DNA of 64,000 bases from Epithemia pelagica (lineage: Eukaryota > Protista > Bacillariophyta). The position numbers were made by a program, and so were the translations under genes. Below, in pieces: positions 51,472 through 63,900 of this stretch (position 1 is its first letter; each line of letters opens with the position of its first letter). Where the stretch lies: NCBI GenBank assembly GCA_946965045.2, contig OX337228.1:3348001-3412000 (forward strand), given 5' to 3'. The notes beneath the pieces were generated by a model that did not search any database, had not been told where the DNA came from, and was given only the letters and a program-made list of their open reading frames with translations.

Positions 51472-51619
51472 CGGCAACATGTGGATGCTCAAAGTTAATC
51501 TTTAAGACATCCTCTAACAACATTTGATAGCCCATTAGACCTATATATGACATACCTAGGTCATATGAGCGCCTCCATTAGAGACATGCGTATTAACTTT
51601 GAGCATCCACATGTTGCCG
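51472..51619. repeat. 148-bp hairpin / MITE-like unit with a perfect 28-bp inverted repeat
   Basis: CGGCAACATGTGGATGCTCAAAGTTAAT (51472-51499) and its reverse complement at 51592-51619. Confidence 0.85.
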
Positions 51620-51888: not shown

Positions 51889-54050
51889 ATGACTTTCTCT
51901 GGTTCTAATCCGTTCCTCGAAGATCTCCTTCCGAAGAAATCGTCGTCGTCGAAAGGATCTGATCCCCCTGCTCCTTTCTCGTCTACTCCCGTGGCAGCCA
52001 TCGTCTCCCAACCTGACGATTCGAAGGATGATAAGAAACCTCCCGCTTCCAGCAACAAGTCCTCCCTCAAGGCTCACGCTCCCAAGGAAGATGATGATGC
52101 TTACTCGGTCGAGTCCGATTCCGAAGCCCAAGAGAAACTCTTTGCTGAAGCCAAGACCATCTCTGTCCTCAACGATAAGATCAAGAAACTCCAGGCTCCG
52201 CCTCCCTCTGCTCCCAAGCGCTCTGACTCTCTCCTTGAAGACTCCGACGCAGCTGATGGTGACGATGAGTTTATCCTCGCCGAAGGAACGATCGGTACTG
52301 ATCCTGCCAAAGGAACTTCCCCCTCTCCTTTTCGTGCAGGCGCCTACCGCCACGAGTTTTACTTTACCCAGGACTTCCACACCCTTGAAGACAAGTCCCT
52401 TGACTTTATCTTCTCCGAACTCGCGAAGACCGAAGCGATCGACTGGTGCGACTCTTTTTTCCAACCTTTTCACGTTACATTGACTCGTGATCCATCCCTT
52501 TGGTCGGAAGTTCGCTCCAGCTTTAATCGTCTCACCTCCGCTGACGATCTTCATGTTTGGCTGACCTCCAAGACGAAGAATCATCCATTTGCATTGTTGG
52601 GTTTGTCTCGCAACGGAAATCCCCTTCTCTTCCACAATCTTTGTTGCCCAGCGGATTGTGGTTCATTCTTCGACCCCCAGATTCCATTTTATGGCCTCAA
52701 TCGCATTTCTTTTGAGACCATCCCGTTCCAACTTGACACTGATGACATCCCTCTACTTTTGAGCGACCATGTTTTCTCCCAAGTCCCCACTTTTGCGGAG
52801 ATCCTCGAGCATTGCGTTGTGGAGGTTGACGACTTCTCCCCGTCGTCTTCTGTCCCTCACCTGACCTTCGACTCATCCAAGCTCAAGAATCTTTCAGTGG
52901 CTTCCGCCTCCTCCTCTTCATTGAAGAAAGATCGCGAATTTGTTTGCTCAAGCCTATGCCTCGTGCCGCCTTGCCTCTCAGGACTCATGCTCCACAACAC
53001 CGACGCCTCGAATCATAACGTCAACATCCCATTTGAAGACTTGGCCAGTGGACTTTATAAGGTTGCCCTCCACCATTGGTGGACAGCCTCTTTGGATAGC
53101 TCTATGGAAACCAAGAAAAAGGGAATGCCGATAGATTACCCCCTCCTCATGATCCAGGAACCCATTATCCATTTTCTCTGGGTCGTCCTCCATCGTCGCG
53201 ATAACCCCAAGTTGCAGATTGTCTTTCCATCGATCCCCAAGGACCCCTTGAAAGCGAAATCCACATTGTTGAGTCATCGCTCCCGCCTTTTTCCCAAGCC
53301 TCCCTCCCAGCCCCACAGGACTCCACCATCATCTCGACGCCCTTCCTTGCGTCGTTCCTCGTCCAGCAACAGCGTTCGTTTCCAATCACAACCGCCGGTT
53401 GATTGTTCGATTCCCCAAGATGGATCTCCCCCGACCAATCTTCAGACCTCGAATAGTGGTGGTGTGCGAATGCTCGATGACGAAGGCAACGTTCATTTCG
53501 TTTCACCAGAAATGTTCCTGCTTTCGAAGTGCATCAAGGAGATGTCCTCAAAGAAAAATGGCAACGAAGATGACATCACTGCCCCAGAGTCAAAGAGCAT
53601 GTTTCGAGACATGCCTTTGAATGCTCAAAAACAACTCCGTCTCGGTTCGATCTCCCCCTCAGCCTCTTCACTCCCAGAAGACCTTTTACCAGCCATCAAG
53701 ATCGTGTGGAAATAGAAGAACTCCGCTACATTTTTCGAGTCCTTCCTAGCCAAAGTCTTTGACCCATCCGACAATGCCTGTACCATCCTTTTCGGACAAT
53801 GTACAGTGATCCAACGTCTTGGGTTACGTTGGAAATCGGAAGCGTGCCCTGGAGGCTTTAGCCCCTTTTCTTTCGATCCGTATGCCATTCCAGGCTTGGA
53901 TTCCAACCAAACACTTGACAAAAACATTCGGCAACAAATCCACGATGCTTCGCTATGCAATACGAGCGGTTCTCGTAACACTTCGCGCGCACGCTTCTCC
54001 AAGACCACGACCAGATACTTTCAGAAACTAGTGACGTCACTATGAAGCAA
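51889..54050 (+). pseudogene. gag: DIRS-type gag, 5' part
   Basis: ATG at 51889. An in-frame TAG at 53713-53715 is followed by an open frame (KNSATFFESFL...). A probable frameshift near 53975 leads into ...QILSETSDVTMKQ. Confidence 0.6.
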
Positions 54051-54522
54051 ACTGTGAGAAGCCTAATTTGTTAAATATAAGCTCGTCACATGATCGACCA
54101 TGGCCTTTTCCGACCGTCTTGCTATTGAATGCCAATTTTGGCCCCAAAACGGATGCTCTACTGCTGTTGTAAGCCTAAGAAACCTTTCTACATAGAGCAT
54201 AGAAGTCGTATCAACCGTTACAACAGAAGCAGATGCCAAGAAATCGGATGTAAACGACCCAATATTGTCGAGACTCCACTGTTCGCCAAAATATGAGCAA
54301 ATTTTCATTTTCCACAACTCGTCCACCTCGCCAGGAACATTCAAACTCTACAGATGTGAATAGAGCATAAACCTTGGTCGCATTTCAATCATCCGTTCCA
54401 AAGTGTTTTTTATATTCACAACGTCTCTCTTCTTGGTAATTGATGTCAATGGATGAGGTGCTATTTGTCTCGTAAACACTCTCCATTACAAACCATGTCG
54501 AGAGTTGAACACCCAAGAGACA

Positions 54523-57500
54523 ATGGCTGGTACGAGACAGCGTAAGAAGACGGAGAAAGGCTCTCAAGCCGCTCCAAAGAATCGAAAAGGACAACGTGGT
54601 ACGAAGACGCCACCGCTCGTAAACTCCCCCTCTCCGAACAAGAAGAAACAGAAGGTACACCGTGCGAGAAGATGCAACATGAAGCAACCGTCCCCAAATC
54701 TCCAAACCCGTAGTAAACGCAAGGAGTCAGGTGTCACCTGTGCGAACAACACAGTTGAATCGGATCGCTTAACCAAAGTGATTGCGGACTTTAAAGACAG
54801 CAAGAAGAAGCCTTGTTCAGTCTTTGGTCTTGATAGGAGACAGCGATACCGAGATTACTTCCTCTGTTTTGAATGTCACGAGGCCGATACCCGCGAGCAA
54901 CTCTATCCTAATCTCGTCACCAACAGAAAAGCAGAACGTGGGGCGTACACTTGTACTGCCAACCATAAGAACATGATCCATCCAACTGATAAGGTCAAGG
55001 TGATTGTCAAAAGGAAACATCTTCGAGCAACCACCAAAACAATCAAGGAGAATATAGTTGCCAAACTCGAAGATCGATCTTCCAAGAAACATGATGACGA
55101 CACAAAGTCTCCCCCAGCCCAGTCTTCAAATGGCGACGACCCTGAGGAATCCTCCAAACCAATGTCCCCAAGGGCACGAAAGTGCCTCAAAAAATACTTA
55201 CACAAGACGAGCAAGTCCAAAACCATTGGCTTCACGAGCACCATCCAAGACAAAACCAAGGACCCACCCAAGGAATCGACCTCTGTCAATGAGATTACCA
55301 CCATGCAGGCAGTTCCTTCAACACCACCCCGACTTGAGAATCATCGAGTCGTCCAAGAACCCATACTTCAAGTCGACGACTCATTGGACCTCAACAAAAT
55401 GGACAAGGCATATTCCAAGAATGAAAAGGATGGAAAAGACTTTCCTCTTCATGAAAAGGACAATGATCAGGGATTGATGACTAGCAATGCAGACAATGAC
55501 TCTCCGAATGACTTACTGTTGGACGCAGCTAACGATTCTGATGGACCAGAGCTCAGCAATACCAGGGAACAAGGGTCTGAGTCAGCTCGCACGACGGACA
55601 AAGGCTCAGAGCCCGATCCCAATGAACAAGGCTCAGAGCCCGCTCCCAATGAACAAGTCTCAGAGCCCGCTACCGATGAACAAGACTCAGAGTCCGCTCC
55701 CAAAGACCACGGCTTTGTGATTATCTCACGTCTGAAAGCAGAACTTGAAAAGGCACGTAATGAGAGCAACAAGATGAGACAGAATTTGAAGGATTCTAAA
55801 AGGGAAGTCAAGAAGCTTACAAACAAGGCGAAGTACTGGAAAGACTTATACAAGGCGAAAGGCGTGCCCATCAAGTTACCCAAGTCTGTTGGAAGGAAGG
55901 ACAATGCTCACAAGGTGGCAGAGCATATTCGAATGTTAGTCGAGACTTCTGTGGATCCCCTTCAAGAAGACAGTTTGGGAGCACAAACCTTTTTCACAGA
56001 TCTGACGACAATGCTCTTGGACCCTTCACTCCACAGTGGACAAAGTAGACGCTGCGCATACGATGTGTTTTGCCAACATGTTAGGAAGCACATCTACACT
56101 CCTCACAATGTGTTGCGACAGATGGACTTACAGGGGGGTGCCTTAAACTTTCGTAACATAGAACTACTACGAGACATTGAAACCAAGGGTAAGCCCTGGC
56201 AGCGAACACTCTTACCAAGTACGTCTGTACTACAGGATTATGCCAAACAAGTCGAGAAGTTTGGGGAAAACTTCTGTCCCTTTAGAATGTTCAAGAATAA
56301 AAAAGATGGGAGCGAAGGGTTTGCATTCAGGGCTGCAGATGTCATTGTAGGAATACTCATGGCCGGAGATGTACTCCAGACAGAAGCATTGTTACGCTCC
56401 ATCAAACTGGCCCAATCAATGGATGGAGCACTCTTCACTAAAAACTTGGGCCATACGCTGGGTGGTCTAAAGTTCAATGATGAATCCAGTGAACTACGTC
56501 AATCCAGAAACGGTGTATTTCCAGTACTATGTGTTTGTACAAGAGAGTCGAAGGGAATTATCCGAGGCATTTTCTACAGGATGATTAAAGAAATACAAGA
56601 GGCAGCTGACTTTGTGGTTCCTCGTCACTTTGGTGTTGAGGCTATTGTAGTTAGTACCAATTGCGACATGAGTTGCGAGTGGAAGCTGGCTGCCCGCGGT
56701 GGTGCAGCAAGGCAAGTCACTTACCCGTGTGCCAAATGCGCAGTGAAAAGCGGGGCCCTCCACTTGCAAAGCCAGCCAACTCACTCCTGTTCTTGGTGTC
56801 AACAGCTTGGACACTTGGCACGGCCTAATTGGATATGCCGGCATCACCGAATCTGTACAAAGGAGGTAATTTCCCAGCTTCGGGAAGAAGTAGACCTTAT
56901 GGAGAAGAATATGCCAAAGAAAGTAGGAAGTTTGGAGGAAGTTTGGATGAGCTCGAACCTAACACATCAGGAAGACCCCAGGAATACACCTACGCCCCAG
57001 AACCTAACCTCAACAAACTCAATTCACTTCAAGATAGAGACTGCATCGCCTGATGACAGAAGAGTGTACAGTGAGAACTTGACCCATGACCTTGTGCTTC
57101 GCGACATGGATTACACAGGGTCCCTACAAGAGCGACAGTGTCGATTAATGGCACAACACATAAAGGAGTGGCATTATTTCCGAGCGTGTCAGAGTCTCTC
57201 CCAATTCGAGGACAGTCAGATAGATAGTGCATTGGTACTCGTCATGGATGTGGTTCCGTGCATCTTGCACATGGAGAATCGCATGGGGATTCTCATCCTG
57301 TCGCTTCTAGCCAAGGTTGGCCTTAGCAATGCCAAGGCAAAGAAGCTACGATGGATGACTGCAACGGACAAGAGATCACAGGAAACTCGAATCAAGGCTT
57401 TCGTCGACATGATGAACAAGATCATGAACACTAAAATTCTTGGCACCGAGGAGCAACCAAGGCAATGGATCTTGCCTTATGATTCGAAGTCGAAGTCCAT

Positions 57501-58305
57501 TGCAATAATTTGCATGGATAATGTAAGAGTACGCAAGGTTGTTGAGAAAGTTGAGGAACTGATCAATATCTGCGTAGCGACTAAGAGTGACCGGACACTT
57601 TGGAAATCTTGTTTGTCCTACTACAGGCAGGGTTATTCGATTCTTCTGCGTAAGGAAGATCTGGACAACACTACAATTTATCAATTCCAGGAGAAAATTG
57701 ATCTCTTCTTCGACAAGTGGATAACCCTGCATGGAGAATCCGGTGTGACAAACTACGCCCATATGTTGGGAAGTGGGCACATCATGGAGTTTTTGTTGCA
57801 CTACAAGAACTTATCCGCCCACTCCCAACAAGGGTGGGAAGGTAAGTGTGGACGAGCAGTCCATTTGTTTCTTTGTGGATTGTTGGCTCACATGATTCTT
57901 CTATCAGCTTTCAACTCGCTTTTCAAGCGTTTCTATTTTACTAGGACGCAGAGGGGTGGGTCGACGAATCGTGGTTTGGGACAGCAAACAAGATTGGAAC
58001 CTATTGCAAAATGGTTGCAGAGACGACTCGTATTCATGGCAGGACATGAATACGAGTACATTCAGGAAACAAACAAAACAATGACGGCGGAAGAGAAAGC
58101 GGCGTTCCAAAATTGGGTACAAAAAGAGAAAGGGACGATGGAGTTTTGTATGCCAATTGACAAGCAGTCAACTGGGACGAGGTTTGATAGTGACGATGAC
58201 TGGGACGTGGGGGTTGGTACAACTGGTGTTTCTGGAGTTCGTGCGAGTGGAGAAGCAGAATTGGATGATGAGTTTTGGTACGATTCTTCTGACGAGAGTC
58301 AATAA
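54523..58305 (+). CDS. RAG1/Transib(CMC)-like DDE transposase; 66-bp intron at 57842-57907
   Basis: SMDG (D at 56422), TNCDM (D at 56665), YPCAKC, CILH, TNYAHMLGSGH, and spliced SQQGWE|AFNSLFKRF (E at 57838). First ATG at 54523. Confidence 0.75.
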   Translation: MAGTRQRKKTEKGSQAAPKNRKGQRGTKTPPLVNSPSPNKKKQKVHRARRCNMKQPSPNLQTRSKRKESGVTCANNTVESDRLTKVIADFKDSKKKPCSVFGLDRRQRYRDYFLCFECHEADTREQLYPNLVTNRKAERGAYTCTANHKNMIHPTDKVKVIVKRKHLRATTKTIKENIVAKLEDRSSKKHDDDTKSPPAQSSNGDDPEESSKPMSPRARKCLKKYLHKTSKSKTIGFTSTIQDKTKDPPKESTSVNEITTMQAVPSTPPRLENHRVVQEPILQVDDSLDLNKMDKAYSKNEKDGKDFPLHEKDNDQGLMTSNADNDSPNDLLLDAANDSDGPELSNTREQGSESARTTDKGSEPDPNEQGSEPAPNEQVSEPATDEQDSESAPKDHGFVIISRLKAELEKARNESNKMRQNLKDSKREVKKLTNKAKYWKDLYKAKGVPIKLPKSVGRKDNAHKVAEHIRMLVETSVDPLQEDSLGAQTFFTDLTTMLLDPSLHSGQSRRCAYDVFCQHVRKHIYTPHNVLRQMDLQGGALNFRNIELLRDIETKGKPWQRTLLPSTSVLQDYAKQVEKFGENFCPFRMFKNKKDGSEGFAFRAADVIVGILMAGDVLQTEALLRSIKLAQSMDGALFTKNLGHTLGGLKFNDESSELRQSRNGVFPVLCVCTRESKGIIRGIFYRMIKEIQEAADFVVPRHFGVEAIVVSTNCDMSCEWKLAARGGAARQVTYPCAKCAVKSGALHLQSQPTHSCSWCQQLGHLARPNWICRHHRICTKEVISQLREEVDLMEKNMPKKVGSLEEVWMSSNLTHQEDPRNTPTPQNLTSTNSIHFKIETASPDDRRVYSENLTHDLVLRDMDYTGSLQERQCRLMAQHIKEWHYFRACQSLSQFEDSQIDSALVLVMDVVPCILHMENRMGILILSLLAKVGLSNAKAKKLRWMTATDKRSQETRIKAFVDMMNKIMNTKILGTEEQPRQWILPYDSKSKSIAIICMDNVRVRKVVEKVEELINICVATKSDRTLWKSCLSYYRQGYSILLRKEDLDNTTIYQFQEKIDLFFDKWITLHGESGVTNYAHMLGSGHIMEFLLHYKNLSAHSQQGWEGKCGRAVHLFLCGLLAHMILLSAFNSLFKRFYFTRTQRGGSTNRGLGQQTRLEPIAKWLQRRLVFMAGHEYEYIQETNKTMTAEEKAAFQNWVQKEKGTMEFCMPIDKQSTGTRFDSDDDWDVGVGTTGVSGVRASGEAELDDEFWYDSSDESQ
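55567..55704 (+). repeat. 27-bp coding minisatellite, about 5 units (EQGSEPAPN)
   Basis: GAACAAG at 55624, 55651 and 55678, with degenerate units at 55567 and 55597. Confidence 0.85.
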
Positions 58306-58388
58306 GGGAGGACGGGAGAACGAAATGCATAGTGAGAATACTACTACAGGAGTAATGAATACATATAAGAATCGATCGAGTCAAACTA

Positions 58389-59858
58389 CTAGTTATAGGC
58401 ATTGATGAGTTCGAGTATGTCTTCATGTGAGAGAGTCTTATCCACACTCTGATGTTTAGGGGGGTTGTCATTGTCGTACAGTTTCCCTGCAATAACCCGA
58501 GACGTGATTTCATGGAGCTCGGTCTCTTGGTGACGAGATATCTGGATTACCTTGTAAATGGTTCCCTCCTTGTCATAGATGTCTCCAATCGAGATGCCTA
58601 TGTCCAAAGGTGCATTCGGGTCGGGGGTTGGTGGTTGCTTATGAGACATAGTGTTCTCATAATTCTCCTTCACTCTACCTTCAACTATGTTCTTCAGATG
58701 GACAGTCGGTGGATCGTGCATGAGAGAACCATCTCTCTTAGTTTGGTAGCAGTACTTGTTGTACCCAACAGTGACTCGGGTATTCAGTGGGGAGAAAGCA
58801 ATGTCCACTCCGTTCCCACGGAAAAGACGTTTGAATGGAGGTTCTTCGGGAAGTTCATCGCTCTGGGAATCACGGCCACGAACCAATGTCACACAGTGTC
58901 CAGAGGACAAGACAACTCCTTTCGGACCATCAGCTAGGCGTGGACGATGCTCGGTAGAGCCATATGTACAGCTGATTCCAAGAGTCTGACGGAGAATCTC
59001 GACGTCACTTGAAGTTTCAAAGCGAAGAACGCCCAGTTTGAAAGAAAACTTGAGTTTCTTGCGGGTCAGTAGATAATCACTGTCTTGGAAAGATTCGGAT
59101 TGGTAAAAAAACTGGCATTTCGAATGGAGGGATTCTTTTGTTACAATAGCCAAGTAGTTGAACGTTTCCATAGGTATATGGCCGATGGATAAGGACGATA
59201 ATTCTTCCGACTCTGCTAGGCTGGTTCGTCTATTCAATGTCTTCGTGATGGCCTTGCGGATCAGATACAGGCCGCGCCAAACAGATTCATGGTAACAGCG
59301 TTTACCTCCCACGAGATGATCCATGGCCAATCTTCCAGTAACATCATTTGGGAAACAAACACTTTCATCTTCGGGCAAGTTGGAAAGGAAAGTTGAGCTG
59401 TCACGAAAGTGATCATTCTTTTGCTCAAGAAATCGTAGAACAAAAACATTGGTGAGACCGTGTGCCCACGAATTCTTTGGATCGGCAATCTCTGTTACCG
59501 AAAATACAAAGGCAGGATAGAGAATGTTGCAGGTTTCTCCAGGGGTCACAGAAAGGAAATCAGTCGATTGATACAGTTCTGTATTGAGACTGCCAGGAGA
59601 GCCAAAGGGAATCGGGCGATGATGATGCTTGGGTAAGTCAGGGAGTCTTTCATTCTTTTTCAATGGAAATAACGGGTAGAATAGCCGGAGATGAAATCCA
59701 TTTTGCGTGCGGCGTTCGATCCGACAAATAGTTGTAGTACCCGGCTCTTGTTTCCAAAGTTTGGCATGAACAAAACTCCCAACACGAAGACAGTCGTCAA
59801 GATGATTTACGTAGAGAGGAGGTTGGTTGATGTGAGCACGAAAGATGTTGGGCGACAT
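58389..59858 (-). CDS. Uncharacterised 489-aa partner protein, convergent with the transposase
   Basis: Intact ORF from the ATG at 59858; its stop lies 83 bp from the transposase stop. No kelch or other family recognised. Confidence 0.75.
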   Translation of the reverse strand: MSPNIFRAHINQPPLYVNHLDDCLRVGSFVHAKLWKQEPGTTTICRIERRTQNGFHLRLFYPLFPLKKNERLPDLPKHHHRPIPFGSPGSLNTELYQSTDFLSVTPGETCNILYPAFVFSVTEIADPKNSWAHGLTNVFVLRFLEQKNDHFRDSSTFLSNLPEDESVCFPNDVTGRLAMDHLVGGKRCYHESVWRGLYLIRKAITKTLNRRTSLAESEELSSLSIGHIPMETFNYLAIVTKESLHSKCQFFYQSESFQDSDYLLTRKKLKFSFKLGVLRFETSSDVEILRQTLGISCTYGSTEHRPRLADGPKGVVLSSGHCVTLVRGRDSQSDELPEEPPFKRLFRGNGVDIAFSPLNTRVTVGYNKYCYQTKRDGSLMHDPPTVHLKNIVEGRVKENYENTMSHKQPPTPDPNAPLDIGISIGDIYDKEGTIYKVIQISRHQETELHEITSRVIAGKLYDNDNPPKHQSVDKTLSHEDILELINAYN

Positions 59859-60213
59859 GGTTGCGATGTATGATATGATAATCAATTCGGTGATCGTCTT
59901 TTAGGCATGATCGTTTGGTTGTTGCATTACATGCCGATCCGGTTGGAGGGTGTTGCATGCAGGGGATGTTGAGCGGTTGAGTCCTCCAATGAATGAGGAT
60001 GATCCATCCGAGATGGTCAATGCCAGTGAGACAAAAAGAATCATGGATGGACATCGTTGAGTTTTTATATATAAGAGAGTGTGGTGAGGCCAAAGACTTT
60101 GTTTAAGCGCGCCGGGTGATATTTTTAAGAGCGAGCCTACCATTTTGGTCAGGAATGCACGTGTGGGTAGAAAAAAGGTTACGACAACCGGTCGTATTGG
60201 TCATCTTAATGAC

Positions 60214-60962
60214 ATGAAGCAATCGAAGGAAATGCAACAACTTTACTCGGATCACAATCTCTTCTTTCCGAGGAGGGCAGACGAGTTTGAAACCCAACTT
60301 CGATCCTTTTGGGCCTGTGCCAAAGGCCTTTGTGGCGCTTCATCCATGATTGCCAACCAAATTTTGAAAGTCTTGAACTTCTACCACCAATTCAGGACCG
60401 CCAATTCTTATTCGCCATCGACGAGGCCGTCCAAGAGTTCGTTTCCACCCTTTCCAGTGCTTCATCGCTTGCTGACGTGGGTTTCAAGGACTTTGAAGAG
60501 CGTGTAAATTGGATCTTGTTCACAGTCAAGACCGGTTCGACTTTAGTCTCCCTCCCACCGGCTCTCCAAGCTAAGTTTCAAGCGAATCAATTGAAGAACT
60601 CTCAGAGGAAACGTTCTGGAGGTTCTGACGACGGTTCCCCAAGCTCCAAACGTCAACAAAGCTCCTCCTCCTCCAATTCCGATCCACAGAAGACCGCAGC
60701 GACTTTCGACTCTCCATCAAACTGGCGTCTCCCGGCTGATTCGAACTTTATGCAAGTCTTTCCCCCCACGGTCCTCACCAACATTCCCTTCATCGAGAAA
60801 AATGGTAAAAAGAAACACTTCTGCAACGTTCTTTTCTCCAAAGGAACCTGCAAGAAAGGCAAGAAATGCAAGTTTCTTCACGATGACCCAAGCAAACACA
60901 ACAAGAAGGATGCCATGGACGAGTTTTATCGGTCGGCATACGCCAATGTCAATCGCAATTGA
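60214..60962 (+). pseudogene. gag: DIRS-type gag, 3' part
   Basis: MKQSKEMQQLYSDHNLFFPRRADEFETQLRSF, a frameshift near 60400, FLFAIDEAVQEF, and the CCCH finger FCNVLFSKGTCKKGKKCKFLH. Confidence 0.72.
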
Positions 60963-63900
60963 CGCCGGGACGGGTTGATTGCTGCCTCATCCTCAATTCC
61001 TTCTTCCTTGTTGCGAGACGACTCTCAACCCACCTTTAATAATAATACTATAGTTGCGGAGTCTTCTTTTCCTTCGAAGCCTCTTGCTCCATCCCCACCA
61101 CCCTCACCCAACATCATCCCATCCTTTCTCCCACCTTTGGCGACACCTTCATCCGACCACAAACCTAAGATCCCGAGCACTGCGAACCCTTTTCTGGTGC
61201 ATCATATCACTCAAGATTATTCAAGACACCCCGAGACCCGTCAACGAGAACTCTCCGACTTGATCTCATCCGTTCAGAATCAATGTGTCATCACGTCTGA
61301 TTCCATTCCCAAGATCTCGTCGTCCGTTGATACACCGTCCTCTATTCCCACGACTGCCGCCAGTCACCCCCGGCCAACTTCCAAGGATCTCCCAAGAGAA
61401 TCTCTTACCGTTGGCACCTCTACAAGACCCCCAAGTCCCCCAAGTTCTCATTCCGAAACTCTATCCTCACAAATTGAGAAGACTCTCCCAGGAAGCTCTT
61501 CAGCGATAATTGGATCCGATTTCTCGGGTAAGCCCCTAGCGCGGAACGTCAAAAGATTGGAACAAGCACGACAAGCGGATATAAAATTACTAGGTGAGTC
61601 TATATATGATGTCGACACGGAATCCGTTCTCCCAAGTTCCCAGCACTGCTATCTCCCCAACAAGATCTCCATGATTTTCCCATCAAGACTCGCTCCTCCC
61701 CCACTCCAAGATGTGTGCCACCCTTTGGACCTTTCCACCATCCTCAAGATTGCCAATCACAAACCGCCGACACCCAAGCCCTCCCCCTTTCGTCACTCCA
61801 TTGACGATGACGTTGTCCTATCAAACGCGACTTTCAACTCACAGCTGATTGAAAGATTCGACTTTGATCTGCAACGACTGATTGACAGCCACCCCGGTTC
61901 CGTCATCACCCCAGGATCCGAATTCCGCACAGCGGAAATCTTGGAACCGCTCCTAGCCGGCCACCCATACTGGTCACGGTTCCACCATAACCTCACGCAA
62001 GGTGTCTCATACCCTCTCACAGCTGAGGAAGAAGAGCCAGCCAGACGCGCTGAGAATGAGGCAATCCTCGAATATGGCAACCATGCCTCTGGTAAGAAAA
62101 ACCCCGACGCTCTTTCCAAAGTCCTCCGAAAAGACGCGTCCAAGGGTTTTTCCCTCCCCATCATGTTTCTCTGCGCAACCGAGATCAAACATAACCGGAT
62201 CAGTCCAATGGGAGTAGCCCACCAAATGGGCATCGATGCCAATGGCGATCTTGTTCCCAAAGACCGTCTGACCCACGATCAATCATTTTCCCTTGGATTC
62301 TGCCCCTCGACAAACGACTTGATCGATCAAAGCAAATTGATTGACCTGGTGATGGGCCACTGTTTAGATCGAGTGATCCACCAAATTGTCGCATTGCGCT
62401 GGCACTTCCCAAATGATCGTATCGTCATAAGCAAATTCGATTGGTCTTCTGCTTATCGTCGCGTTCACGGAGACGGCGATGTTGCAGCAAGGAATATAAC
62501 CATTGATCCATCCAATTCCTTTGCCCACCTAAATCTCCGCTTGACTTTCGGAGCTTCAGCCAATCCAGCCGAATTTTCCATCGTCTCCAAAATTGGAACT
62601 GACCTCTGCAACGATCTCGCCGATTTCGACGATTGGCAACCAACCGATTGCCAATCACCACTCCAAGAAGGCATTGGGGGACCCAAGTACCTACCAGAAG
62701 AATTCCCCGTAGCTCCAGCATGCGAATTGGCTGTTTCTGTCCCAACTCGTCCTCATGGATTTCATGATTCATACCTGGATGACATGATTCAAGTCTTCCT
62801 CGCCACCAACCCACATCTCGCCCGATGTCCCAGTATTGTCCCACTCGTTGTCCATCTCATGACAAGGCCCGTAGCCGACAACGAACCGATCCCAAGAAAA
62901 GACATGTTGGAAGCAGACAAACTCGCAGCCGAAGGCGCTCCTGCCGAAGAGCAACGAGTTCTCGGGTGGATTGTTGACACAAGGTGACTTCTCCTTCGCC
63001 TCCCAAAAGACAAGTTGATTGGTTGGACACGCGAAGTGAATCAAATGTTATCCAGTCGACGGACAACCTTCCAAAACCTTCGCAGTCTCATCGGGAAATT
63101 GCTCCATGCCACCAAAGGCATTCCACACGCGTCCTTCTGGTTGTCACGGCTACGCGAATACCAAACATTCATCGAACAAGCGTTTCGGCAAAAACAGCAA
63201 TCGAAACCACCCGACACCAACAAGGATCCAAAACAACCAAAACAAAACAGAGATGTACCACCTTCATTCTATCGGTACTCCATCCCTGAGTCCATCGCCA
63301 ACGACCTCCAAGTGTGGCCGTCCCTCCTCCAACACTCCCACGACGGCATCTCACTTAACCGACTAGTTTGTCGCGTACCCACACATCTCTTCCATGCAGA
63401 CTCATGCCCTGAAGGAATGGGCGGTTACTCTGTTCGATCCGGCAGAGCATGGCGATTCCAAATCGACCAATCAAGACTCGAAGCTCTTGCCCAACTCGAC
63501 CCATCATCTACCAACACACGCGCCAACAATCTTTTTGAGTACATCGCAATTGTTGTGTCAATGTGGGTTGATTGTTGGTACGATGACATCGATGAAAACT
63601 CGGCCGTACTGAGTCTCTCCGACAACTCATCCGCCGTCGGCTGGATGTACAAATCGTCCTTCGGCTCCGACAAGCCGCTACAGGTCCAAGTCTCGAAGAA
63701 ACTGACCGACTTGATTCTCCACCACAAGTTTGCCCTTCAAGCGGAACACATCCCTGGGAGCAAGAACGACGTGTCAGACATCCTGTCAAGATACTGGTCT
63801 CTTAACGATAACGATCTTACCCTTTTTCTTCATGAAAATTTTATGTTGCAGATTCCAGAGAATTTTCACATCAGTCCCTTGCCCAACGAAATACTATGTT

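Follow-up and report, generated by a model that had tools for sequence, protein, structure and literature searches.

A probable two-gene DNA transposon of the diatom Epithemia pelagica with a RAG1-fold transposase and a BAH-like candidate partner

A 64,000-nt stretch of the Epithemia pelagica genome (contig OX337228.1, positions 3,348,001 to 3,412,000 of the forward strand; hereafter the window) contains a long open reading frame (ORF) at 54523-58305 that an earlier note, made from the letters of the DNA, had ascribed to a stramenopile branch of the RAG1/Transib lineage. The locus raises the question of whether this gene belongs to a mobile element and, if so, to which group of DDE transposons. 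Our analyses indicate that it is one of two genes of a 6,242-bp element (53958..60199) that is very probably intact, autonomous, recently mobile by cut-and-paste, and part of a large Pfam-less lineage within the CMCT clade. This clade unites EnSpm-Mirage-Chapaev-Transib with Plavaka, ESTA and Lanisha, and its hallmarks are C(2)C, H(3-4)H before E, 5'-CA..TG-3' termini and a target-site duplication (TSD) of 2-5 bp (Kojima 2025, PMC12730594). What is new here is a CMCT-clade lineage with a new partner gene and an unusual flank signature.

The element and its copies

The ends of the element were located by comparing its copies; a generic repeat finder for long inverted repeats missed them. The element has inverted ends of 22 bp, 20 of which match, and its terminal inverted repeat (TIR), CAATACGAGCGGTTCTCGTAAC (beginning CAATACG), had two matches in the window and none in 100 shuffles. 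A copy on another contig (L001) is 98.3% identical and matches the window solely over 53954..60170, and a further copy (L002/L004), 99.3-99.6% identical, has the same left start, ends exactly at 60199 and has different flanks. The short contig L003 is identical to the window along its entire length. Some of the copies have been interrupted: L001 carries a 6.5-kb foreign insertion (L001:15648-22167) 7 bp inside its right repeat, and the transposase gene of L002 is split by a reverse-transcriptase element. Both genes are open in the window copy. The near-identical copies, their differing flanks, the nested insertions in some of them and the two open genes together support our assignment of 53958..60199 as the element, and as one that moved recently.

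Transposase sequence, relatives and fold

The transposase ORF (54505..58305, +) has 1266 aa when counted from a TTG, has its first ATG at 54523, and corresponds to the called protein P0183 (1260 aa). The six motifs that had been listed for 54523-58305 were all found in the ORF and in the same order, at the following positions (TTG numbering, used throughout unless stated): SMDG at aa 638-641, TNCDM at 718-722, YPCAKC at 740-745, CILH at 919-922, TNYAHMLGSGH at 1082-1092, and QQGWE at 1108-1112 with AFNSLFKRF at 1135-1143. The last of these had been given as the contiguous string QQGWEAFNSLFKRF, which holds once an in-frame stretch of 66 nt (57842..57907, GTAAGT...CAG) is removed. We assign this stretch as an intron based on the fact that the aligned homologues read ...QQGWEA.NS..K... 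without the 22 residues it encodes, that several paralogue gene calls break exactly after GWE, and that 57839 is directly followed by 57906 in a 1,099-nt contig from the public run X4, the 66 nt left out having GT..AG ends (cut +2). The spliced product has 1238 aa. Run X4 covers just the 3' part of the transposase gene and small pieces of the neighboring gene, a pattern that looks like transcripts.

To assess conservation we aligned 32 homologues sharing 28-72% identity with the window protein. Invariant in all 32 are the D of SMDG, the CxxC, the C, L and H of CILH, the two His of HxxxxxH and three other Cys/His residues; for the D of TNCDM and the E of QQGWE, conservation is 90% or more. Consequently, the motifs are more than chance resemblances. 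The N-terminal Cys/His finger, coiled coil and internal C/H insert proposed earlier are also present (aa 104-159, ~405-450 and 762-781, respectively), the first and last of them being conserved in the family consensus. The N-terminal Cys/His motif had no Pfam or Atlas match and the language-model search gave no usable match for it; we infer that it is a DNA-binding zinc finger. A second metal site in the C/H-rich insert is possible.

The family is large. A word-indexed search returned 41 relatives, comprising paralogues from large ENA contigs at 41-98% identity and proteins from metagenomes at 28-36%, and an exhaustive profile search returned 4,238 cluster representatives at E<=1e-3, of which 689 were at E<=1e-30; the best 150 of the 4,238 matches, which were those listed, are all close family. 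No relevant Pfam domain was found in the relatives, and a single relative is named, a hypothetical protein from the diatom Epithemia clementina.

We modeled residues 480-1266 with AlphaFold2 (AF2) from the family alignment; the model had a mean predicted local distance difference test score (pLDDT) of 82.5 and a predicted template modeling score (pTM) of 0.75, with the intron-encoded loop and the acidic tail disordered. In a Foldseek search of the PDB, a check that the earlier note had suggested, the top 49 matches were all RAG1, HzTransib or BbRAGL, and the same three proteins led the VIA-align comparison (Table 1). The structural alignment pairs model residues 45-709 with RAG1 ~459-1008, which we take to extend from the dimerisation/DNA-binding domain through the C-terminal domain. 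The model puts D640 in strand 1 of the RNase H-like sheet, D721 after strand 4 and E1112 ahead of the helix AFNSLFKRF. The spacings around these proposed catalytic residues and the zinc ligands, D721-21-CxxC and H1092-20-E1112, are close to those of RAG1, D708-19-C727xxC730 and H942-20-E962.

Table 1. Solved structures compared with the predicted transposase core (rmsd, root-mean-square deviation).
Structure	Foldseek E	VIA-align Z	Residues aligned	rmsd
RAG1	down to 1e-9	16.2	469	5.4
HzTransib	4e-6	15.2	412/480	4.3
BbRAGL	1.5e-4	14.8	456	5.1
P element transposase (next fold)		8.3	360	6.9
ISCth4		5.8	308	8.2
Hermes	0.02	4.8	298	6.5

The match around the Glu and the zinc ligands, previously described as striking, had no significance as sequence. 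No RAG1 or Transib chain was found in the PDB at E<=10 by phmmer or hmmsearch, whether with the whole protein, with full-length and core profiles, or with sub-domain profiles built on these very motifs (a 114-residue ZnH2-to-Glu profile and a 218-position RNase H/ZnC2 profile); the PDB sequence matches were coiled-coil or chance only. Pfam searches of the whole protein and of the 32 members at E<=10 gave no RAG1, Transposase_21, Transposase_24 or other CACTA model, and the word-indexed family-profile search at E<=10 returned family members only and no annotated family.

Predicted structures in the ESM Atlas provided a wider comparison. Clusters of Transposase_21 (plant CACTA and arthropod), of DUF1280/DUF1258 and of RAG1 match alike, all with a template modeling (TM) score of ~0.5 over the same ~480 residues, and the fold therefore marks the whole clade. 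In the Atlas fold ranking the CACTA and DUF1280 clusters come before the RAG1 clusters, i.e., it leans toward CMC (EnSpm/CACTA, Mirage and Chapaev). The nearest named clusters by language-model features carry RAG1_RNase_H (arthropod and vertebrate; score 0.94, 183/256 features shared), and there was no Transposase_21 cluster among the matches listed.

Table 2. Features of the element in window coordinates (CDS, coding sequence; residue numbers from TTG, with spliced numbers after the slash).
Feature	Position	Strand	Evidence or remark
Left flanking base G	53957	.	equals base at 60200
Left TIR, CAATACGAGCGGTTCTCGTAAC	53958..53979	+	similarity of L001/L002 begins within four bases; their flanks differ
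Transposase CDS exon 1, ATG to ...QQGWE	54523..57841	+	ORF; matches P0183
N-terminal Cys/His motif, C-x16-CxxC...CxxxH...H	54814..54981	+	in family consensus
Coiled-coil segment	55717..55854	+	PDB matches here only of coiled-coil type; PF12329 in two paralogues
Catalytic core, predicted RAG1/Transib-type fold, model residues 45-709, spans intron	56074..58068	+	AF2, Foldseek, VIA-align
Proposed catalytic Asp 1, D640/D634	56422..56424	+	invariant in 32; first RNase H-like strand of model
Proposed catalytic Asp 2, D721/D715	56665..56667	+	at least 90% conserved; after model strand E236-240 (fourth strand)
CxxC, C742 and C745, proposed zinc ligands, RAG1 ZnC2 equivalent	56728..56739	+	both invariant; begins 21 residues past Asp 2
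Extra C/H-rich insert, CSWC...WICRHH	56788..56847	+	C765, C778 and H780 invariant
HxxxxxH, H1086 and H1092, proposed zinc ligands, RAG1 ZnH2 equivalent	57760..57780	+	both invariant; second His 20 residues ahead of Glu
Proposed catalytic Glu, E1112/E1106, last full codon of exon 1	57838..57840	+	at least 90% conserved; invariant in C-terminal sub-alignment
Intron, 66 nt in-frame, GTAAGT...CAG	57842..57907	+	sequence, homologues, X4 contig
Transposase CDS exon 2, AFNSLFKRF... to stop	57908..58305	+	ORF
Partner gene, 489 aa from ATG	58389..59858	-	ORF; matches P0202
Tudor/SH3-like small barrel (predicted), residues ~429-498	58392..58601	-	local pLDDT ~75; VIA Z 5-6, weak
BAH-like domain (predicted), residues ~25-180	59346..59813	-	local pLDDT ~75
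Right TIR, 20/22 match to left	60178..60199	-	similarity of L004 stops exactly at 60199
Right flanking base G	60200	.	identical to 53957

Partner gene, termini and flanks across the family

The second gene of the element runs toward the transposase gene, and 83 bp separate the two stop codons. An ORF in the same convergent position was found in eight of the nine elements outside the window subfamily (L005, L007-L014; L006 is truncated), and the metagenome elements have a convergent ORF of 458-507 aa there. Homologues of the partner, down to 36% identity, are on contigs that also carry transposase paralogues, and the partner is kept even where the transposase is just ~30-35% identical. By BLASTP the window partner matched that of L011 at E=5e-14 and L011 matched the distant L014 at E=2e-10; the window against L014 gave only E=0.014. 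The conserved position and the homology across lineages indicate that the partner is ancient and has been inherited together with the transposase.

Pfam and PDB profile searches of the partner had no match, and the language-model search gave no usable one. In its predicted structure, residues ~25-180 resemble BAH domains: 16 of the 17 top matches in an unbiased VIA search were BAH (Z 6.1-8.6), and the top 50 Foldseek matches were all BAH proteins (best E=9e-4). The C-terminal barrel matched Tudor, chromo-barrel, KOW and PWWP domains in VIA (Z 5-6). There was no kelch propeller in the model, the middle third of which is of low confidence. The partner thus models as a BAH-like plus Tudor-like protein, chromatin-reader-like and unrelated to RAG2. 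Kelch genes near two copies (L001:2578-4137 (-) and L008:1443-2558 (-)) were considered as a RAG2-like partner and rejected, as they are outside the TIRs and none is in the window; these genes, 2-5 kb left of the copies, are paralogues at 32% identity within a host gene family.

The termini of the lineages for which we had elements are compiled in Table 3. All five have 5'-CA...TG-3' ends, beginning with CAATACG in the three diatom subfamilies, with CAATAGC in the metagenome lineage and with CACATCC solely in L014. A heptamer like that of recombination signal sequences (5'-CACAGTG type) was not found at the element ends, and when we looked for bipartite or asymmetric (12/23-like) TIRs only the symmetric 22-bp terminal repeat was found.

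Table 3. Lineages of the family and their terminal repeats.
Lineage	Transposase identity	Elements	Ends
Window subfamily		window, L001, L002/L004	CAATACGAGCGGTTCTCGTAAC
Subfamily 2	73%	L005-L007	CAATACGAGCGGTTCTCGTGAC
Subfamily 3	49%	L008-L010	CAATACGAGCACCCCTAGT
Metagenome element, 5,646 bp	35%	L011-L013	CAATAGCAACCAAGGAGTGGGATGAC, 24/26 match
Most distant lineage		L014	CACATCCAGCCT

All nine elements whose two ends were read have one and the same base directly outside either end (G, C, A, T, G, A, T, C and A), an agreement for which the chance would be ~4e-6 if bases were independent. No longer direct repeat, including a TSD of 5 bp or of 2-3 bp, was seen in the flanks of these nine. For comparison, the TSD of CACTA is 3 bp and that of Transib and RAG is 5 bp. 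The simplest reading of the flanks, and of the flanks only, is a 1-bp TSD. An empty site for the window insertion was not found among the loci compared.

Several smaller regularities were noted at the ends. The second base outward is also identical in six of the nine elements (window, L001, L002/L004, L005, L007, L008, L012, L013 and L014), in mirror and not direct order (e.g., TG and GT on the two sides; window 53956/60201), and we know of no transposition mechanism that predicts this. A GC-alternating palindromic motif (GCGCGC or ACGCGT), read by eye, recurs 27-39 bp inward of the left end in four lineages with otherwise different TIRs (window 53984-53990, L008:4484-4490, L012:360-367 and L005:5483-5490); it could be a second transposase-binding or a promoter element. 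CACGTG is present ~37-43 bp inside the right end in two subfamilies. Three copies from two subfamilies (L001; L009, ~11045 onward; L010, ~11013 onward) have a foreign insert a few bases from the inner edge of the right TIR, and two of these three inserts begin with an identical terminus, TGTCTTATT, that resembles the end of a long terminal repeat. These insertions may reflect a preferred target or coincidence.

Probable placement in the CMCT clade, proposed mechanism and neighborhood

The assignment of the family to the CMCT clade is consistent with the invariant C742-x2-C745, situated 21 residues past D721, and with the 5'-CA..TG-3' ends. Distant members of the clade such as ESTA have been recognizable only via HHpred similarity to RAG1 (PMC12730594). 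There are also points that weigh against our interpretation. The transposase has H-x5-H (HMLGSGH) in place of H(3-4)H, a one-residue variant, and the 1-bp duplication is outside the 2-5 bp of the clade and was deduced from flanks, without an empty site. Since no search gave a sequence-level link to any named family, the placement rests on the predicted fold, the motifs and the termini. The catalytic residues are candidates, picked by their conservation, their spacing and the secondary structure around them. The model of the partner is of poor quality as a whole (pLDDT 52.6), and its similarity to BAH domains is of middling strength (Z 8.6, Foldseek E ~1e-3). Finally, run X4, the source of the spliced contig, is not on record as RNA, its run type being unrecorded.

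Where the family belongs inside the clade is less clear because the language-model features lean toward RAG1/Transib and the Atlas fold ranking leans toward CMC. We therefore refer to the transposase as RAG1-like in fold, and neither as a member of Transib nor as part of any other single branch. The wider frame of the earlier note, a member of the RAG1/Transib/CMC group that need not be a described family, is what the evidence supports. For the narrower claim of a RAG1/Transib branch the core fold, the spacings and the language-model features are favorable, and sequence similarity, a Transib-specific fold, a CAC heptamer and a 5-bp TSD are not. It is possible, though less likely than not, that the family is a separate, ancient, superfamily-level lineage of the RAG1 fold in diatoms and other marine protists, which independently acquired a chromatin-reading helper with BAH and Tudor-like domains, in functional parallel to the pairing of RAG1 with RAG2, and which integrates with a 1-bp stagger.

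It is also possible, if somewhat doubtful, that the family is a deep branch of Transib/RAG1, closer to Transib and the RAG1-like proteins than to CACTA, Mirage or Chapaev. This would be consistent with the solved-structure matches, which are all RAG1, Transib or BbRAGL over RAG1 ~459-1008, with the RAG1_RNase_H clusters nearest in language-model features and the lack of Transposase_21 among the matches listed, and with spacings near those of RAG1. However, RAG1 is the sole solved fold of its kind in the hit list because the PDB hits contained no CACTA, Mirage or Chapaev transposase, and in the Atlas, as noted above, CACTA and DUF1280 clusters rank ahead of it. None of the 32 members has a RAG1 Pfam match, the flank repeat is 1 bp and not 5 bp, and the termini are CAATA and not a CAC heptamer. 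Compared with Transib itself (Kapitonov and Jurka 2005; HzTransib PDB 6pqx, 6pqn), with which it shares the DDE core fold and CA...TG termini, our element is without detectable sequence similarity and has H(5)H where Transib has H(4)H, CAATA in place of a CACAGTG-type heptamer, and a flank repeat of 1 bp instead of 5 bp. It also has a second gene, a long N-terminal region (Cys/His finger and coiled coil) and the extra C/H insert.

A canonical RAG-like element is known from another stramenopile, the pelagophyte Aureococcus (AanRAGL; PMC9435367), which makes a deep branch in diatoms more plausible; it was the only stramenopile RAG-like element we found in the literature. AanRAGL has a RAG2-like gene, CAC ends and a 5-bp TSD (PMC9435367), none of which is present in the diatom family. 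With RAG1/RAG2 and the RAG-like transposons in general (ProtoRAG BbRAGL, PDB 6b40; AanRAGL), our element shares the fold (Z 14.8-16.2) and convergent genes between TIRs, and its partner is plausibly a chromatin reader, as is the PHD finger of RAG2. The partner is, however, BAH-like and Tudor-like where RAG2 is a six-bladed kelch propeller with a PHD finger, and here there is no 5-bp TSD, no heptamer/nonamer-like or asymmetric end was seen, and there is no RAG1 Pfam match.

We consider it unlikely that the family is a divergent member of CMC proper (Yuan and Wessler 2011), possibly one already present in Repbase or Dfam as a diatom 'EnSpm' family. Transposase_21, DUF1280 and DUF1258 Atlas clusters match the same 480 residues at TM 0.5, the termini are 5'-CA..TG-3', and L014 begins with CACATCC. 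In addition, EnSpm/CACTA elements of diatoms are mentioned in repeat-pipeline reports, and diatom genome papers give only pipeline labels of this kind, such as EnSpm or CACTA (PMC7466962, PMC11842555). We found no description of the present family in the literature, Repbase and Dfam being outside the search. Against a position in CMC are the lack of a Transposase_21 or other CACTA Pfam match at E<=10, the H(5)H, the conserved BAH-like partner gene, the fact that no 2-3 bp TSD was seen, and language-model neighbors that are mainly of the RAG1 type. That the two genes are instead a domesticated host pair or an inactive relic is very improbable: both ORFs are intact, transcript contigs exist and many paralogue gene calls are broken, but the TIRs are defined, near-identical copies have unrelated flanks, some copies but not others carry nested insertions, and the 5,646-bp metagenome element is ~100% identical in three samples with differing flanks.

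Among better known elements, PIF/Harbinger resembles the family in needing, or at least always carrying, a gene for a second, non-catalytic protein; it differs in that its transposase fold family and its Myb-like partner are unrelated and its TSD is 3 bp. The evolution of RAG1 is usually drawn from Transib to a RAG-like transposon to RAG, in a scheme where RAG2 was captured once. A large, old family with the same fold and an unrelated, obligate-looking chromatin-reader partner suggests that the pairing of such an enzyme with a chromatin helper arose more than once, and would offer a second system in which to ask what advantage such a partner brings. A confirmed 1-bp flank repeat would extend the range of target-joining geometries known for RAG1-fold enzymes; for the CMCT clade (2-5 bp), a 1-bp stagger is not reported in the literature consulted. 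The family also marks an annotation gap, with more than 4,000 protein clusters lacking a Pfam family and diatom transposons of this kind at most pipeline-labeled. Because it is intact and appears to be transcribed, the window copy is a candidate active transposon for diatom genetics.

What the data show is the architecture and how it is conserved, the modeled fold, the other copies and the contig with the splice, and from these we propose the following mechanism for the element. The transposase probably dimerises via its coiled coil and the region that aligns with the RAG1 dimerisation/DNA-binding domain, and the N-terminal Cys/His finger and the core would recognize the CAATA ends. D634, D715 and E1106 (spliced numbering) would bind the metal ions and cleave, while CxxC and HxxxxxH are expected to hold a structural zinc, as in RAG1. 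By analogy to RAG, Transib and hAT, excision would probably proceed by a nick followed by a hairpin on the flank, and integration with an unusually short stagger would result in the 1-bp duplication. The partner probably tethers or licenses the transposase on chromatin via its BAH-like and Tudor-like modules, a role that would be analogous to chromatin reading by RAG2, although without homology, and to that of the Harbinger accessory protein.

Outside the element, window positions 60309-62987, directly to its right, contain a CCCH zinc-finger ORF (Torus/zf-CCCH) and a 670-aa ORF with a YLDD reverse-transcriptase-like motif and no Pfam match. Upstream of the element, at 51472-51619, there is a perfect 28-nt inverted repeat with a 92-nt spacer.

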